Shown: piece by piece, positions 423 through 24,593 of the stretch | Position numbering within the stretch: the stretch's first letter is position 1 | Layout of the letters: each line of letters opens with the position of its first letter | DNA from: Salisapilia sapeloensis CBS 127946 | Taxonomy: Eukaryota; Protista; Oomycota | DNA: 50,327 nucleotides | NCBI GenBank assembly: GCA_023334545.1 | Contig: JAADVB010000136.1 | Location: 1-50,327, forward strand | Direction of reading: 5' to 3' | Position numbers and translations under genes: made by a program | The notes under the pieces: model-generated | What the model saw: the letters and a program-made list of their open reading frames with translations, nothing else | Told to the model about the DNA's origin: nothing | The model's database searches: none

Positions 423-1983
423 ATGCGTCTGCTGTCCATTGTGCTGCCATGGCTTTAACTATATTGTCAGTGTGCTGATTAAAAAATGAAGAGAATTCAC
501 TCTGCGCTAGGCATTTTATGCCCTCGAACCCTTCAATTGCATAGCCTTTGTACCCCCTGAGGGAACAGATCCCAGTCCCACCCTCCGTGAAGTACTGATA
601 TCGTAACTCGCGGAATTATCAGACTGCTTGAAGTGTCTGCTTCAAGCAAATAATTTGTTTTTTGTATACGGCAATTACCAAGATGGTGGGAAATGACAAT
701 ACCAGGATTTTAAGCTGTATTCATAACCAGAGATAATGTGTGTTTTTCAGGTGGGCGGGCTGTTTCTCCCAGCAACTCAATACACCTAAGCAATCCTATG
801 ATAACAATGAGAGCTAGGCTGTGAAAATAGCTCCGGGCTCGAAGGAATTTGGCGTGCTCATGTCCATCCTATTTATATGTAGATTTAAATAAACGGGATC
901 AAGCAAGTATTTTGTGCTAGAAAGAATCAGTTTTCCACCGATAGGCAGGTATTGCTTTCAATTGGAGCATATAAGTTCCCTAATTGTGTTCATGCTGAGA
1001 ATGTATAGAGAAGCATATAGTACAGGTTGCTATCGCTTCGACCTCATCGGCACGTGGGATCCTTTCCACGACATTTCATCCTCGTTCCAGACCTCCCACT
1101 AGTTTCTGATGCACCTATTATAACCTTGATTTGCTTTAAATTACTTTAAGCACTTTGCATGCGCGGATTCCTGACTCCCAGCAAATCTGATAAGGTCTGA
1201 ATTACCGGTAACCTGGTGGAACAAGGAATTGCAGCGCCGTACTGTTGCTTGTGCACTCGCGTTGCCATTTAGACCTGAGCAACAACATAAGACATGATAA
1301 GCATGATGGCAACGGGATCCTGTACTTGCTCGAATAAACTGGACTTCTGATCAGGACCGTTGTCAATGAAAATGGTACTTCTGTGCTGATAGCTAGAACT
1401 ACATAACGTCTTGCGGATGTATAGCTGAGCCATGCTAACGAAATGCCATTCGATACGCAACTTTTCATATTTCCACGACAGCATAGAGCTTTCTTCCGAC
1501 GGATAAATCTCGTTTTGCGTAGAAGCGGCATTGAAGTGCCGACCGGAAAGACATGGTAGTCCGCAGCAAAAGTTCGTGCGCACGTCGTTGAACACCCGGT
1601 GTAGATAAGTGCATGTCGCTTGTAAAGTGACGATCAGCACAGGCTGAATCCAACCGCGAACATCGCTTCAACGATTTTATCGAAGCGTCCGACCTCACCA
1701 GATCATGCGCAGTGGTATCTTCAAGTTCGTATGTTAGCCGAATTAAGCGTTTGATGGCTTTTTCCCTTGCTCCTCAGGCGCCAAAGAGGGCTAGGCAGAC
1801 AACACTTCCCATCGTCTAGGCAAATTACGAAGAATCGGGTGTAAACGCAGGTGGGCATGACTCGATGTTCGTCGCTTTTATGCGTGATTCACAACGAAAG
1901 TGAAGATATAAGATCTATTGTACACACAGACTCGTCTTATGGTCGGTATCGATGTGTCTGATCGCTTCGAAATTGTTTAGAGT

Positions 1984-1998
1984 GCTCATTCCCACTTT
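1984..1998 (+). promoter_or_regulatory. Oomycete INR(+FPR-like) core promoter of the phenolic acid decarboxylase gene
   Basis: GCTCATTCCCACTTT ends 44 bp upstream of ATG 2043. It matches INR YCAYTYY followed by a near-FPR element. Confidence 0.55.
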
Positions 1999-2042
1999 GG
2001 CTCTCCATCCAGCAAGCGCTCGCAACTCGACTATAAACCAAA

Positions 2043-2579
2043 ATGGTCTTGACGATCCCAGGCTACCACACCAACACTCCACTTCATCCGTCCTTTGACG
2101 AAGACATTCGTGACAAGCACTTGATCTATGATTACAATGCGGAAGACGAGGATGGAAGACCGCAAAAGTGGCGCTATGAGATGTACTTCCAGACCGAGTC
2201 TCGGATTGTATACTCCATCCACGGGGGTCCTATGGCTGGTCGCCTCAACTACCAGACAGTTGCTTTCCAGTGCATTCGCCCAGGCGAACTGTGGCAATGC
2301 AACTGGCTCGAAGAGACCGGTACCATTGTAAGCCTCGTATACGATATTAAGAACAAGAAAATTACGACCATGGGTGGTTTTTCGAAAGGTCATTGGGAGC
2401 ACAACAAGGAAGCACTCGGCGATAAGCGTAACCCAGAGGATTATGCACGCTGGAGAAAGCTTGCGGAGTACGGTAACAACCGCGACCGTCTCATCCTGAG
2501 TGAGCAGGCAGACATTCTTGAAACCTTCACTGGTAAAGGTAACCTTGAGCCAGTGAATCCTAACTGCGAGACGCTATGA
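2043..2579 (+). CDS. padC: Phenolic acid decarboxylase (PAD/PadC family, cofactor-free), fungal-type, intronless
   Basis: 178 aa. Motifs HLIYDY, WRYEMY, IVYSIHGGPMAGR and WLEETGTIVSL match B. subtilis PadC HMIYTY, WEYEIY, IDYRIHSGMVAGR and WTEPTGTDVSL. Catalytic Tyr/Tyr/Arg/Glu equivalents (Y29, Y31, R67, E90) are present. Confidence 0.93.
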   Translation: MVLTIPGYHTNTPLHPSFDEDIRDKHLIYDYNAEDEDGRPQKWRYEMYFQTESRIVYSIHGGPMAGRLNYQTVAFQCIRPGELWQCNWLEETGTIVSLVYDIKNKKITTMGGFSKGHWEHNKEALGDKRNPEDYARWRKLAEYGNNRDRLILSEQADILETFTGKGNLEPVNPNCETL

Positions 2580-2937
2580 CTCCATCGAGCACTCACTTGA
2601 GTTGTCATGATTGTCCAATCTTCACTTTTCCATGCTGCAGGTCCAAGCGGAAAGAAGTCGTAGATAGCTGCAACGATAATATACTTGTGGAATATATTGC
2701 TCCTATATTCCTGAATCATACGAGAGAAAATTTGTCTAGATTTATGAGCTTTATCAGACACAGCACCGACACCGCCTTAGCCGAGCTGTCTTCCAATTGT
2801 ATCTATAAAAAGGATCTCATTAAAAACTACTCGCAATACGAACTCTACAAAAATCACTTCACATTCGCAAGTATCAACATGAACAATTCACCTTACGGCA
2901 GCAAAAACGCATGTGTATTTACCTAGACAGACTCCTC

Positions 2938-4230
2938 TTAGATTGTAACAATGATTGCACCACTTGAATTACGATCTCGGAAATCCTCGTCCGATGGCTT
3001 TTGGTCAGCGGGATTGATAGCATCGTCGTACGAAGCAGTTAGGTCGATGTCACCGCTTCTCGGCGTGACGTCCGACAGCGAGTTAGACGCTATAGCAAGA
3101 CTTTCCAGAGTCAACTCTACTGAATTATCCATGGACGCTTCCAAGTCTTTCCGGATGCACACTTCCGCGCTAATGCGACTTGTACTAAGAACGCATCCTT
3201 TACAAAACAAGAATGTCTTCAGCTTCAGCACGTTCCGATCGACATTCATAACGATACGGCGACGCGTTTTACATCGACCACAAAGCTGCTGGCGACATAG
3301 AATGCAAATGCCATGACTGATCCAAGACTTTCCGGATCCACAGCCACCAGCACAGCTCATCTTCGACGTTTCGTTTCGTGAAGACTTGTTCTTGAAAGAC
3401 CGTTGCATCATCCAGTGTAGCTTTCTGGATCTACCAGCCTCGCCGACTAGAGCTGATGTAGCGAGAAACATGCTCACAGACTTAGTCGAAGCTATTTCTG
3501 GAAGCGAACCCATTGTAGCCATATATCCAGTATGGTATAGCTCGACAAAGTTGGCATCCAACTGGCGTCGGAGATAGCAGAACGAGCCCTTTGCTCGCAC
3601 AACTCCATTGTTTGTATGCGTCTCACGAATATCAACTGAGTGAGCGATAAAGTAGCCAATTTGTTGGCCATCTTTTCCAACTGTCATGCCCATTCTAAAG
3701 ACCATCACGATGTCCCTTACATCAACGAATGGAATAATCGATTTGCCCATGATCAAGCGTACGATTGCACAGCTCTGGTACGGTTGCTCAGCGGTTGGCT
3801 CCTCGATTGTACACAAAAATTGAGTGTACAATAAGTTGTCACCAACGTACGTAGATCGCGCATGCCAGTCCGCTGCTTTGCACGAAAGATCTCCGTATTG
3901 AAAGTCGCTGACTGTCCCTGGAACTTTGCCAACGATGAGAAATTTAGGAACCGATTGATTGGGATCCGTGACCGTATAGCCGCCCCCTGGAGTCTTGAGC
4001 ATGCGAGGAGACTCACGAACGTTTCTTCGGTCTCGGTACATGTGCCAGTGGTCAACTCTTTGGACTGGTTTCCAGTAAGCAGTATCCACTTGTCTCTTGT
4101 ATTTGATTCGATGCTCTTCAAATTCTGAAATTGTTTTCTGCAGAATCTCGTCAGTCATTTGCTTTAACTGGGTTTCAGACTCTGGTCGTAGCGCAATGCT
4201 TGACGGAACATCAGCTAAATACTTTTCCAT
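2938..4230 (-). CDS. START-like domain protein with C-terminal degenerate FYVE-type zinc finger (expanded oomycete family)
   Basis: 430 aa intronless ORF with the N-terminal WK...MYR / IVGKVPGTVSD pattern of this family and four CxxC-type pairs (CAGGC, CILC, CGRC, CKGC). The canonical FYVE RRHHCR motif is absent. Confidence 0.8.
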   Translation of the reverse strand: MEKYLADVPSSIALRPESETQLKQMTDEILQKTISEFEEHRIKYKRQVDTAYWKPVQRVDHWHMYRDRRNVRESPRMLKTPGGGYTVTDPNQSVPKFLIVGKVPGTVSDFQYGDLSCKAADWHARSTYVGDNLLYTQFLCTIEEPTAEQPYQSCAIVRLIMGKSIIPFVDVRDIVMVFRMGMTVGKDGQQIGYFIAHSVDIRETHTNNGVVRAKGSFCYLRRQLDANFVELYHTGYMATMGSLPEIASTKSVSMFLATSALVGEAGRSRKLHWMMQRSFKNKSSRNETSKMSCAGGCGSGKSWISHGICILCRQQLCGRCKTRRRIVMNVDRNVLKLKTFLFCKGCVLSTSRISAEVCIRKDLEASMDNSVELTLESLAIASNSLSDVTPRSGDIDLTASYDDAINPADQKPSDEDFRDRNSSGAIIVTI

Positions 4231-4289: not shown

Positions 4290-5131
4290 TAGTGAGATCG
4301 GGTTTTGATACAGTAAAGACTTAAACGCGTTTCGTCACTTTGGATCAGCTTCTTGTCCCTTGCAAACCATCGACATCTTGTCCGACCAGCTTTCAATTAA
4401 GTCTCTACACTATCGCCATAACTTCGAGCATGCTTGAGTCAAGGTAACGAAGCCTCAGGCTCAATATCAATTGGAACTTGAAGGGTCTGATCCAGACGAA
4501 GTGCGCATTAATCCAGTTCTAGCGAGACTGCACCAGGCGAAAAGCTTCCAAATAACTTCGAAGTAGTCCAATGGAACCAAAGCAAAATAATTAACCACAC
4601 ATAGCATAATAAAAATTCCCTTTCCTTTGATGGTTAATGCGACATAGGGATAAATAAGATGATTATTGTCTTTATCGGTGTGCGAGCGTCTTCAGTATCA
4701 CCCTACCTTTGCTAAAGGCCATTTAAATAGGTAGGTGAGTCGGGTTGCTCTAGACCACATATCTGGCTTTTAATGTGTAAGGCATCAAATAATTACTGTC
4801 ATCTGGCATTCATTTGAAGCTCGCATCTTCTTTACCAGCGTTCATTTCACTACACTTCCAGAATGCTTCAAGTGGAACTGGTAGCTCATTTCAACGAAGC
4901 ATGTAATGTTTTAAAATGGAGCCATAGGAATATTATATTAGCATATACTAGTCATAAAGTCCATCAGGATAAATAGTAAAAAAGCAGGCACTTGCATCAT
5001 ACGCTAAGAGCCATTTCCACGTCCGTATCCTAGGTTACCACGTTCTGAACCCATTTCTGCGTAAGCAATGCAAGCGTGTCACGGTACCCCTAAAGTACCA
5101 TTTATAAACAACAAAACGTGCAAGCTCGAAA

Positions 5132-6543
5132 ATGGATCAAGAGACTGGTGAAGAGTACGCTCCAGCGCCAGTTGATACGTCGAACGATCGCGGAAAGTCA
5201 TCTACAAAATCTAAACCTTCAAACGCGTTGTCGTACGCAAGTAAAATTGCTTCTGGTAGCTTTCGTCGATCACCAACGCAGCGCAAACAGGACGACTCAA
5301 TCCCAAGTCGCTCTCCACCTCGTTCTTCCCGAATGAAAGGAATAGCGACGGGTGCATTTACTAGTGCTGCAAGTATAGCATCAGTTGGTTTCTCCTCCAT
5401 TACGTCCGTTGGTTCTTCCTTTGGTACTAAACTTGCATCATCGTCTCAACAAGTACTCGATGCTTTCACTCCTCCAGAAGGCTTCGGTGGAAATGACGGC
5501 GAAGATGAGCACCCAGCCAGTGCTAATGGTATAAACGAAAACTCAGACCGTGTGTCCCAAACTCCCACAGAAACGGAGAGTAAATACCAACAGCTAGAAA
5601 TGAATCGAGCAGAAGAGCTTGAGCGCCTTGTGCAGTCTCGAAAGCAAGACTTTTTGTATATGAAACGCGTTATTGAAGACCGTCGTAGCTACTGTATGGC
5701 TGTCATTCAGGTCCAAGAGTCTCACGTGAAGCAATCACAGGAGACTGCATCATCCGTCCGACTGTCTATGCAGCATTACTACCTAGGTCTCAGCCTCGGG
5801 AAAATCCTAGACGCATGCACTTCTCCTCTTGTTACAGAGATACCACAGAAACTAGCAATGGACGCATGTCAATTGATGGAAGAGCTGGAATTCCACTTTG
5901 CCTCTTCAACCGTCCAAAGCATGGTACCTTCGTCGATCTTTCCTCTTTTCCATTCCTGACATCGCTATGACTATAGAAAATGATGGTGGCGACGAACACA
6001 ACACTGTATGAACCAGCACTCTCGTCCGTCGACGAAGCTCAGTACTCGCTGCAGAGCTCCTTCCGGCCCTCTCTATACAAATGGAATCAACGCCCTGTAT
6101 ACCGCAAACTCCTCACTCCATCCGTCGTATGCTCTTGCTTGCCACACCCTTATCGAAACGTACTAATCGTATATCAATAGCCTATTGCATTGGACGCTCG
6201 AGAAATACGACTGTCTCTATTCGACCTTTTGATCCTCCTGTACAGTAAGTTTCTGGAGGAAGAGACCAGTTGGAAGAGCCAAGTGCTGTTCGAAACGATC
6301 GCTCGCTTCAATGACCGTGTCCAAGTATGTGCTGTCATTTGATGATACGATACAAAGCATCCTTAACGCTGTAAATAGAAACTAGTTCTCAATCCGTTGA
6401 AGAAAGAGATGGAAGTAGCCATGAAGTCAGCATTAACTGAGGAACTTGCGGTCGTCAGGAATTCATTTTCATCCAAATCGTATGTGGAAGCAAGGAAGAG
6501 CTCAAAAGCTCCTCCAGATTCTTTATTCCAAGAAGAGACGTAG
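5132..6543 (+). CDS. Conserved-looking hypothetical protein, 4 exons (Ser-rich disordered N-terminus, helical C-terminal domain)
   Basis: Manual splicing with three phase-0 GT-AG introns (5924-5976, 6127-6180, and one between about 6325 and 6378) joins ORF 5132-5959, ORF 5980-6180 and downstream exons into one frame ending at TAG 6541-6543. Confidence 0.7.
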
Positions 6544-22176: not shown

Positions 22177-24593
22177 ATGAAGAAACTGGTGATCAAACCG
22201 TATAGACAGAATATGGGCATGGATGCCACTCGAGCGCAAGAGATCTGGACGTCTTTGCGTAGTGCTATTCATGAGATCTTCTCCCATAATGCGAGTCAAT
22301 TATCCTTTGAAGAGCTCTATCGGTACGATCTTTATCAGAGAATCTATAGTTACTTGCATTTATAGGTGAGGTTTGTATTGCGTAGGAATTCGTACAACCT
22401 GGTGTTGCACAAACACGGAGATTTACTGTATAATGGCGTGATTGATGTAATCACGGAGCAGCTGCAGGCGACATCGTCCGAGGTCGCTGGATCGTCGGAT
22501 GAACTACTTCTGGTCGTCCTCTACCAGAAATGGCATGACCACAAACTCATCATGACCATGGTCCGAGATATTCTCATGTACATGGTACGTCCTCACATCA
22601 GTCTGCCTCTTTCCATCACTTGGATAGTAGATTCGCATGTATCACCCAACGATATCGTATTTGAGTTCCAATCTACTCGCACATAACTCTTTCTAGGCAT
22701 GTTTCTGACTTTACTCAATGCTAGGATCGTACGTACGTCAACCAGAAGCGAAAGACACCAGTGTACGACGCTGGGCTGCTCATCTTTCGAGACCATGTCG
22801 TTCGTAATTCTCAAATCCGAGACCGTCTTCGCTCCCTCCTCTTAGAAAACGTCGCTCGAGAACGTCAGGGAGAAGTGATCGACCGGAATCTCATGAAAAG
22901 TGTGCTCCAGATGCTCGTCGACTTGGGCATCCACTCCACATCCGTGTACGACCAGGACTTTGAAACGTACTTCCTCGACCAGACGCTCGAGTTCTATCGT
23001 CACGAAGCACAGACATTGTTGGATGAAGCAACGTGTCCCGAGTACCTCGCTCGAGCATCGCAGCGCCTATCGGAAGAAGCGAATCGAGTGACGCACTACC
23101 TTCACAAGAGCACAGAACCAAAGCTAAAGAGTCTCGTGGAGACGCAGCTGATCAAGCACCAAGCATCTGCACTCGTCTCGATGCCATCGTCTGGCTGCGT
23201 CGCACTTTTCCGAGAGAAAAAGACCGACGCGTTGCGTAAAATGTATTCCTTGTTCCGTCGCGTCCCGTCGACGTTGCCCAGCATCAGCGACTGCGTCTAC
23301 AACTACATTGTCGACGCCGGACATGCCTTGATGGAAGCTCAGAAAGACCCAGAGGTGGCGCTAGGTGCCTCTGCCTTTGTGGACAAACTCCTCGGTCTTC
23401 GTTCGACATTCGCAACGTTCCTCTCGGACTGTTTCTACGACGATAGTGCGTTCCATAAAGCCATGAAGCAAGGTTTCGAGGCGTTCATGAACCCTCCTGG
23501 CGTCCCACTCTGTGCTGCTCTCCTGGCAACATACTTGGATGAACTCTTACGATCGAAAATGAAGATGGAGCAAGTGGATTTAGACGCGAAAGTCGTCCAA
23601 GTCATTGCTTTATTTCGATACTTGGAAGATAAAGATGTGTTTGAAGACTTTTATAAGAAACTTTTGGCTAAGAGACTACTGCAGCATCGTACGACGTCGG
23701 AAGAGAGCGAACGGACGGTCTTGGTGAAACTCAAGGCCGAGTGCGGATACCAGTTCACGAGCAAGTTGGAAGGCATGCTCAACGACGTGGACGTTTCGAA
23801 AGACACGATGGAGCAGTATCGAGAGTTTGTAGGTAAGCGTAGTCTGGCGTTAAACGCACAGGTGCTCACGAGTGGCTTTTGGCCGAGTGAAGTACGCAGT
23901 TCTTGTGTCTTGCCACAGGAGATGCAGGACATGGCGACGTCGTTTGAAACGTACTACTTGTCTCGACATAATGGACGCAAGTTGGAGTGGGCTCCTTCGC
24001 TCGGAAACGTCGACGTGAAGGCTGTGTTAGGTGGGAAGAAGGTGGAGCTAGTCGTCACGACCTACCAAGCTGTCATCTTGGATGTATTCAACGGTGGAGA
24101 TGCCTTCGGACTGGCAGAGCTCTTGGATCGAACGAGGATTGAAAAGGCAGAGCTGAAGCGACACTTGATCTCACTTTGTACGCCCAAGTGCCGAGTGCTC
24201 TTGAAGAGCTCAAAGGCGAAGAGGATTGATGAAGAGACGGACGTTTTCTCCGTCAACGATGCGTTCAAGAGCAAGTTGCATCGAGTCAAAGTGCCCCTTG
24301 TGTCCCAGAAGGAAGAGTCGCTGACCAAAGCATCGGGAGGCAAGGTGGATGGGATGCTGCCACCGACTGTGGCGGAAGACCGGAAGCATCTGGTGGAAGC
24401 AGCGATCGTCCGGATCATGAAGACGAGGAAACAGTTGCAGCATAATGAGCTCATGTCGGAGGTGACGAGACAGATGAGCGGAAGGTTCCAGCCGACGCCG
24501 CAGCTGATCAAACTCCGGATCGAGAGTCTGATTGAACGAGAGTACTTGGCACGAACGGCGCATGACCGACGTGTGTACAACTATTTAGCCTAG
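22177..24593 (+). CDS. CUL3: Cullin-3
   Basis: Introns 22323-22385 and 22585-22724. N-terminal LSFEELYRNSYNLVLHKHG is typical of Cul3. Also present are the cullin homology block DKDVFEDFYKKLLAKRLL and the neddylation site IVRIMKTRK. Confidence 0.93.

Follow-up and report, generated by a model that had tools for sequence, protein, structure and literature searches.

A fungal-type phenolic acid decarboxylase gene in the oomycete Salisapilia sapeloensis and its probable origin by horizontal transfer

The window analyzed here is the whole stretch of 50,327 nucleotides of Salisapilia sapeloensis CBS 127946 (contig JAADVB010000136.1, positions 1 to 50,327 of the forward strand, assembly GCA_023334545.1), which belongs to an assembly of 22.4 Mb in 1,365 contigs. 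Near its left end, at 2043..2579 (+, stop codon included), lies a gene for a phenolic acid decarboxylase (PAD). The 178-residue product is assigned to the fungal 'phenol acid carboxylase' clade on the basis of its open reading frame (ORF), the Pfam family PF05870, full-length homologues, and AlphaFold2 and Foldseek results. Other genes in the window encode a pyridoxal phosphate (PLP)-dependent decarboxylase, a kinase, a WD40 protein, a cullin, an SMC protein and a ceramidase. We describe the PAD gene and its predicted product, its relatives and surroundings, and how it probably came to reside in oomycetes.

The decarboxylase gene and its predicted product

The ORF begins with ATG and contains no internal stop codon. 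Its translation can be aligned end to end (100% coverage) with 178-residue oomycete and fungal homologues, and therefore the gene is intronless and complete. In a Pfam profile search, the protein matches PF05870 (PA_decarbox) with 43.2 bits (E 4e-11, cut-off 24.6), and the alignment covers profile positions 4-98 of 158. An NCBIfam search of the protein gave no match. Among proteins of solved structure, the PAD protein is best matched by reconstructed ancestral PADs (8A85, E 1e-10) and by the enzymes of L. plantarum, Bacillus and Enterobacter. An AlphaFold2 model built on a 79-sequence alignment has a predicted local distance difference test score (pLDDT) of 96.6 and a predicted template modeling score (pTM) of 0.90. 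Foldseek with this model returned a probability of 1.0 to every solved PAD (8A85, 2GC9, 3NAD, 4ALB, 3NX1 and 2P8G), with template modeling (TM) scores of 0.67-0.80 and 143-170 columns aligned. The lipocalin-like beta-barrel fold of PADs is predicted by these two methods over nearly the whole chain, and the number of matched columns suggests that the C-terminal half beyond the Pfam match is also PAD-like. There is no hydrophobic segment at the N-terminus (maximum Kyte-Doolittle value 0.19) and thus no signal peptide. Judged from its sequence, the PAD protein is most likely cytosolic; NlePAD, a PAD of the fungus Neolentinus lepideus, was likewise obtained from intracellular fluid on purification.

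The catalytic residues were located by HMMER alignments to the L. plantarum enzyme (LpPDC) and to ancestral PADs, with numbering and roles according to PMC10886158. The segment Tyr29-Asp30-Tyr31 (codons at 2127..2135, +), which aligns to HFIYTY of LpPDC, contains the two carboxylate-binding tyrosines, corresponding to Y18/Y20 of LpPDC and Y11/Y13 of BsuPAD. Arg67 (codon at 2241..2243, +) occupies an invariant column and corresponds to R48 of LpPDC and R41 of BsuPAD. Glu90 (codon at 2310..2312, +) is aligned to E71 of LpPDC in 'WTEPTGT', corresponding to E64 of BsuPAD. Across the 79 PAD sequences Y29 is invariant and Y31 nearly invariant; Glu90 is also nearly invariant, and Glu91 directly after it is invariant. 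Y29, Y31, R67 and E90 are all kept in every oomycete PAD copy that was aligned.

Several other features are specific to one part of the family. The inserted segment AEDEDGRPQK (residues 33-42, 2139..2168, +) falls in a gap of 8-9 columns in the bacterial, Gonapodya and Tremellales rows. His117 (codon at 2391..2393, +), located in GHWE, aligns with a fungal-specific active-site histidine, H100 of NlePAD. This histidine is kept in all oomycete and crown fungal rows (the crown clade of the trees described below) and is absent from the bacterial rows; H100 is conserved in all fungal PADs analyzed in PMC10886158, where its role is described. Together with the N-terminal extension, segment 33-42 and the stretch GHWEH..GDKRNP..RW are common to crown fungal PADs and the oomycete PAD, and they are missing in the bacterial, chytrid Gonapodya and Tremellales relatives. 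The original prediction, made from the DNA letters, had described an intact, intronless PAD with all four catalytic-site residues and had named these three features as fungal in type. The 178-residue ORF, the PF05870 match, the full-length homologues, the PAD fold and the alignment to LpPDC bear out the first two statements, and the three features are real and shared with crown fungi, not with bacteria.

These similarities and differences can be placed against characterized enzymes. Four fungal PADs have been characterized: IfaPAD from Isaria/Cordyceps farinosa, AluPAD from Aspergillus luchuensis, ScoFAD from Schizophyllum commune and NlePAD (PMC7751879, PMC10886158). They belong to the same clade as the window PAD, are about 164-180 residues long, and have the same catalytic Tyr/Tyr/Arg/Glu, N-terminal extension, inserted segment and GHW histidine. 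They differ in their fungal hosts, whereas the window gene is found in an oomycete and is intronless; exon-sized fragments among the fungal and metagenome matches suggest that fungal PAD genes have introns near residues 64, 91 and 117. The bacterial PadC/PDC/FADase enzymes (B. subtilis 2P8G/4ALB, L. plantarum 2GC9/2W2A and Enterobacter 3NX1) share the fold (TM 0.67-0.80) and the four catalytic residues, and hence the same cofactor-free quinone-methide mechanism. However, they are only 20-29% identical to the window PAD, lack both the N-terminal extension and the inserted segment, and have Val at the His117 position, and the C-terminal third of the window PAD is too divergent for the Pfam profile.

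Relatives of the decarboxylase and their phylogeny

A word-index homologue search with the PAD protein returned 540 matches, and the named rows are the best 120 of these 540. Oomycetes rank first among the matches listed, with identities of 84% for Phytophthora (P.) nicotianae, 80% for Plasmopara halstedii, 79% for Peronospora matthiolae, 78% for Peronosclerospora sorghi, 76% for Globisporangium splendens, 73% for P. lilii and 72% for P. cinnamomi. Next come, without interruption, proteins of Dikarya and unnamed metagenome proteins, with identities of 58-75%. The window PAD is 62-75% identical to Dikarya proteins, including 66% to the characterized IfaPAD (row P0026) and 74% to a Stereum homologue, versus 27-31% to bacterial PADs, which agrees with the earlier assignment to the fungal clade and not to Bacillus PadC. 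Identity between Globisporangium and Stereum PADs reaches 80%. The crown fungal PADs among the matches listed span Pezizomycotina, Taphrinomycotina, Agaricomycetes and Tremellomycetes. No PAD of a non-oomycete stramenopile, an alveolate or an animal is among the matches listed.

An exhaustive search of 1.84 billion representatives (50%-identity clusters) gave 205 matches. Among its full-length representatives, the outliers are fungal, namely a Mollisia paralogue (59%), Tremellales (55%), Lentinula (about 35-39%) and the chytrid Gonapodya (about 30%, and 42% over the N-terminal part). Farther out are bacterial PADs, with 31-33% identity, and the liverwort Marchantia paleacea, with 33%. This plant encodes at least five PAD-like proteins (P0243 and cluster members; 223-360 residues, about 33% identical to the query), an isolated occurrence among plants that may be a separate acquisition. 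A paper on horizontal gene transfer (HGT) in Marchantia (PMC12890914) does not concern PAD.

Cluster look-ups add P. infestans T30-4, P. cactorum, P. fragariae, P. ramorum, P. capsici, P. idaei, P. sojae, Bremia lactucae and G. ultimum to the oomycetes with PAD, and copies are found in at least 10 Phytophthora species and in Bremia, Plasmopara, Peronospora, Peronosclerospora and Globisporangium. Several Phytophthora species contain 2-3 PAD paralogues. The two paralogues of P. cinnamomi have adjacent accession numbers, which suggests a tandem pair, and in P. nicotianae the intact gene is preceded, at a distance of about 1.5 kb, by a partial second PAD-like stretch (L006:8380-8629) that is probably the remnant of a tandem duplicate. 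The oomycete orthologues are located on scaffolds of 0.4-21 Mb. The PAD genes of Plasmopara and P. nicotianae have an alpha-kinase and a thioredoxin gene as common neighbors, and an RXLR-WY gene is close by.

Two maximum-likelihood (ML) trees were built, a quick one of 132 rows and a careful one of 70 rows, the alignment having 180 columns. The 70-row tree omits unnamed environmental rows (except P0001 and P0085, which were kept) and the long P0165, P0136, P0229, P0243, P0254 and P0124. In the 132-row tree, all oomycete PADs form one clade (SH-aLRT 92) deep within the fungal crown. In the 70-row tree, the oomycete clade has a support of 99/96 and a stem of 0.13, and it is a single clade in 99% of the bootstrap trees. 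It is nested in the fungal crown in both ML trees. A branch of 1.08, with a support of 92/95, sets the crown clade itself apart from the rows of Tremellales, Gonapodya and bacteria. The same tree pairs the PADs of Marasmius and the ascomycete Elasticomyces at 100/95.

A stronger case for a transfer can be made from the branch lengths. The mean patristic distance is 0.96 between oomycetes and Ascomycota and 0.86 between oomycetes and Basidiomycota, compared with 0.85 between Ascomycota and Basidiomycota, 0.87 within Ascomycota and 0.43 within oomycetes. The distance between oomycete and fungal PADs is thus about that between the two Dikarya phyla. Vertical descent would imply a split that long predates Dikarya, and such a split cannot be reconciled with these values. 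The mean distance within the fungal crown (0.87) is about twice that within oomycetes (0.38-0.43).

Gene copies, flanking sequence and neighboring genes

The S. sapeloensis genome contains three PAD copies: the window gene, a second at the start of contig C1171 (2.9 kb, 94% amino acid identity) and a third at the start of contig C846 (7.1 kb, 84%). They form a clade of their own in the 70-row tree (100/99). Between the copies, the coding sequences (CDS) are 81-88% identical, the synonymous divergence (dS) is 0.75-1.1 and the ratio of nonsynonymous to synonymous divergence (dN/dS) is 0.04-0.11, which indicates old lineage-specific duplicates under purifying selection. DNA homology among the copies, as detected by blastn, is confined to 1981-2700 of the window. 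Exactly the first 141 nucleotides are the same in C1171 and C846 (G000:C1171:1-141 and G000:C846:1-141; L012, L013), after which identity drops to about 83%. The shared start is most simply a de Bruijn graph overlap with k=141, and therefore the leader and the first 25 codons of these two copies are not independent observations. For this reason, we did not take the leader identity of C1171 and C846 as extreme conservation, and the comparison with the window copy alone was used.

This comparison defines a leader or core-promoter region of 62 nucleotides at 1981..2042 (+), directly before the start codon. It shows 2 differences from the other copies, while CDS identity is 81-88%. The leader was not found elsewhere in the genome, and RNA structure prediction gave no fold signal for it (z = -0.16). 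The 3' flank common to the paralogues, at 2580..2700 (+) according to the blastn limits and the alignment, includes a well-conserved block of about 35 nucleotides at about 2666-2700. This one comparison suggests that the leader and the 3' block may be constrained regulatory sequence. At 1984-1992, 51 nucleotides upstream of the PAD ATG, the leader contains TCATTCC within the initiator-like motif GCTCATTCC, which resembles the oomycete initiator (INR) consensus. The pattern YCATTYY occurs 5 times in the window versus 5.2 expected and GCTCATTYY 2 times versus 2.4 expected, neither above chance. The other GCTCATTYY match is at 4884-4892 (+), about 240 nucleotides upstream of an ORF at 5132..5959 (+). 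A scan for bacterial promoters and terminators, which is irrelevant to a eukaryotic gene, was also at chance level.

Directly downstream of the PAD gene is an ORF of 430 codons at 2938..4230 (-), whose product ends in a Cys-rich stretch resembling FYVE domains. Pfam gave no match to it, and the word-index search gave no homologue at E<=1e-5; the ORF may be an orphan gene, a fast-evolving gene or no gene at all. We dropped it as an oomycete-specific neighbor, as without matches it carries no taxonomic information. The ORF at 5132..5959 (+) has no Pfam match either. A tblastx comparison of the window with the PAD loci of Plasmopara, P. nicotianae, Globisporangium and SRR15309551 found nothing in common beyond PAD.

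The contig is better characterized by its cullin-3 gene (22177-24590, +), which contains introns and was recovered as three exons by six-frame match. Its best matches are oomycetes only, with fungi accounting for 0 of the 120 matches listed. It is 61-63% identical to the orthologues of Phytophthora, Pythium, Lagenidium and Globisporangium, among which identities are 74-79%. Its identity is 53% to those of Albugo and Saprolegniales and at most 49% to those of other stramenopiles. In the cullin-3 tree it forms a long branch inside the clade of Peronosporales, Pythiales and Albugo (SH-aLRT 99). It is the sole cullin-3-type match in the assembly, and we therefore rejected the idea that it is a divergent paralogue. 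The low identity and the long branch suggest that S. sapeloensis is a divergent peronosporomycete without a close sequenced relative. Judging by these comparisons, the linked cullin-3 has the divergence expected of vertical descent. We note the contrast between cullin-3 of this organism, with only 61-63% identity to the sequenced orthologues, and its PAD, with 84% identity to the P. nicotianae protein.

Two other statements of the original prediction, that the PAD gene has its own oomycete-type INR promoter and that it is embedded among typical oomycete genes, fared less well. The promoter claim is not borne out, as the motif is present but at chance frequency. The second claim holds for the contig as a whole, which carries cullin-3, but not for the immediate neighbors at 2938..4230 and 5132..5959, which have no relatives or Pfam matches. 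The GC content at third codon positions (GC3) of PAD is 0.59, versus 0.49-0.66 in neighboring genes. Because of this similarity in GC3, the orthologues on large scaffolds, the synteny between Plasmopara and P. nicotianae and the oomycete cullin-3 on the contig, we conclude from the sequence data that PAD is resident in oomycete nuclear genomes and is not contamination.

Function, origin and place among known transfers

The four characterized fungal PADs decarboxylate ferulic acid without a cofactor, and p-coumaric, caffeic or sinapic acid depending on the enzyme. IfaPAD decarboxylates p-coumaric and ferulic acid, with caffeic acid listed without kinetic values, ScoFAD accepts ferulic acid only, and NlePAD accepts sinapic acid too (PMC7751879, PMC10886158). 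Because the fungal enzymes differ in their substrates, the substrate range cannot be read from sequence, which counts against a precise functional assignment. The same reaction is the best inference for the window PAD, given its 66% identity to IfaPAD and its complete active site; it would decarboxylate hydroxycinnamates like its fungal relatives. In the proposed mechanism, the substrate would be a p-hydroxycinnamic acid, namely ferulic, p-coumaric or caffeic acid. Tyr29 and Tyr31 would bind its carboxylate, and the Arg67/Glu90 pair would take the proton from the para-hydroxyl group, generating a quinone-methide intermediate. CO2 would then depart and the 4-vinylphenol would be released. Hydroxycinnamic acids are major cell-wall-bound and defence compounds, and the likely role of the enzyme is to handle the hydroxycinnamates of the plant cell wall and of plant defence. 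An unlikely alternative, and the strongest of those we considered, is that the protein has another role in oomycetes with its PAD fold kept, such as acting on a different substrate or calycin-like binding. The wide variation of substrate range among the fungal enzymes (PMC7751879, PMC10886158) is in line with such a role, and so is the retention of PAD by the obligate biotrophs Plasmopara, Peronospora and Bremia. On the other hand, the four catalytic residues and the fungal His are kept in every copy, the identity to IfaPAD is identity to an active enzyme, and a dN/dS of 0.04-0.11 fits a conserved enzymatic function.

Taking sequence, structure prediction and phylogeny together, we consider it quite probable that the window gene encodes a cytosolic, cofactor-free PAD that entered oomycetes by one old transfer from a Dikarya-type fungus, was then duplicated, and serves in the handling of hydroxycinnamates. 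In this scenario, a single horizontal transfer would have brought PAD into oomycetes before the split of Globisporangium, Phytophthora, the downy mildews and the Salisapilia lineage. Repeated duplication would have followed, leading to three copies in S. sapeloensis and 2-3 in several Phytophthora species, and the gene would have been retained under strong purifying selection. We infer both the direction and the date of the transfer. Transfer is the best explanation because of the patristic distances, the single short-stemmed oomycete clade, the shared insert and extension, the fungal next relatives and the vertical pattern of cullin-3. The twofold diversity of the fungal PADs and the host-like GC3 additionally favor a single old event directed from a fungus to an oomycete. 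As far as sequence comparison can tell, this event is old, is common to Peronosporales, Pythiales and the Salisapilia lineage, and is not peculiar to the S. sapeloensis genome. As the gene is shared and already annotated, the presence of PAD in an oomycete is not surprising.

Several results weigh against this interpretation. In the 70-row tree, the nodes from the oomycete clade to the crown root have a support of 83-85 only. Approximately unbiased (AU) tests did not reject a tree in which the crown Dikarya are held together with oomycetes outside (delta lnL 3.0, p 0.455) or one in which all fungi are held together with oomycetes outside (delta lnL 12.0, p 0.377), and as neither alternative is rejected with 180 columns, no donor lineage can be named. 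The fungal PAD tree also departs from the species tree, with Basidiomycota in five places, an incongruence that hints at weak signal, transfers among fungi or contaminated assemblies. Finally, the absence of Saprolegniales, Albugo and non-oomycete stramenopiles is based on the best 120 of 540 matches and on the full-length 50%-identity representatives, with no search aimed at these groups. The fungus-to-oomycete transfer proposed in the original prediction, for which a tree was to be the check, is thus upheld in part. The tree gave one oomycete clade (99/96, stem 0.13), and the distances (0.86-0.96 versus 0.85) and the distribution agree with a transfer, but the AU tests do not establish the nesting within fungi or the identity of the donor. 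Hydroxycinnamate detoxification or volatile vinylphenol production, as also suggested there, would be possible consequences.

The weak placement of the crown root, which allows oomycetes to be sister to the sampled Dikarya, would also suit a transfer in the reverse direction, from oomycetes to fungi. We regard this as very unlikely, because the PADs of the fungal crown are twice as diverse (mean 0.87) as those of oomycetes (0.38-0.43) and come from Pezizomycotina, Taphrinomycotina, Agaricomycetes and Tremellomycetes, and because the next outward relatives are fungal too. Vertical descent seems slightly less likely still; it would require that PAD dates back to the common ancestor of fungi and stramenopiles, changed at an exceptionally low rate and disappeared from nearly all other eukaryotes. 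It could draw on the AU tests, which do not reject oomycetes as sister to the fungal PADs, and on the strong purifying selection on PAD. However, the oomycete-fungus distances are no larger than those between Ascomycota and Basidiomycota, slow evolution is not general in the family, as other fungal members show (about 30% for Gonapodya and about 35-39% for Lentinula), other stramenopiles, alveolates and animals are absent from the matches listed, and cullin-3 on the same contig has diverged as a vertically inherited gene should. An artefact, in which the PAD gene would be fungal contamination or the fungal part of a chimeric oomycete contig, is hardly credible: the PAD gene does lie 2 kb from a contig end beside neighbors without recognizable relatives, and the other two copies are at ends of short contigs sharing the identical 141-nucleotide start, but PAD groups with oomycete orthologues at 99/96 (76-84% identity to P. 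nicotianae, Plasmopara and Globisporangium), is at most 75% identical to any fungus compared, has orthologues on megabase nuclear scaffolds of many sequenced oomycetes, and matches the host genes on the contig in GC3.

With an old transfer from a Dikarya-type fungus as the preferred explanation, the question is how far this gene was known. Annotations of PAD already exist for many oomycetes; in P. infestans T30-4 it is labeled 'phenol acid carboxylase, putative'. The passage on 'Pheca', or phenolic acid decarboxylase, in PMC5729717 (citing Panek et al. 2016) describes it as a nuclear Phytophthora marker, used with the internal transcribed spacer (ITS) and cox1, that delimits P. cactorum and P. 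hedraiandra. The marker is probably of the same gene family as the window PAD, although the exact paralogue may differ, and that passage treats it as a sequence marker only and does not discuss the origin or function of the gene. Table S1 of Savory et al. 2015, which incorporates Richards et al. 2011, contains 48 oomycete HGT families, and PAD (PF05870) is not among them. Full-text literature searches on the Pheca marker and on PAD in connection with oomycetes and HGT yielded no paper proposing a transfer of PAD. Like the families of Savory et al. 2015, PAD forms a monophyletic oomycete group within or next to the fungal radiation, is concentrated in Phytophthora, Pythium and downy mildews, was duplicated after the transfer and concerns plant-derived substrates. 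It differs in that 69% of those families are secreted, whereas PAD is predicted to be non-secreted, and in that its nesting in the donor clade is not statistically established. PAD is a probable additional family of fungus-to-oomycete HGT.

Table S1 of Savory et al. 2015 also includes other phenolic-catabolism genes of fungal origin, namely a UbiD-type carboxy-lyase (#41), quercetin 2,3-dioxygenase (#15), intradiol dioxygenase (#11) and laccase (#5). We tentatively propose, with rather more doubt than for the transfer itself, that PAD is an uncatalogued 49th transfer family and part of a borrowed toolkit with the UbiD-type decarboxylase, quercetinase, intradiol dioxygenase and laccase, and that the conserved 62-nucleotide leader may mediate its induction. 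If this is true, the toolkit would have let the lineage of Pythium, Phytophthora and downy mildews cope with plant hydroxycinnamates, and PAD is kept under strong selection even by obligate biotrophs and by the divergent Salisapilia lineage.

Gene transfer from fungi to oomycetes is a well-known contributor to oomycete plant parasitism. The gain from the present analysis is incremental, since this type of transfer, the enzyme family and its mechanism are well known and many oomycete genomes already had the gene annotated. PAD would add a non-secreted phenolic-handling enzyme to the list of fungus-to-oomycete transfers. As a duplicated gene retained by biotrophs, hemibiotrophs and necrotrophs, it is a reasonable candidate for a role in the tolerance of host phenolics or in vinylphenol production.

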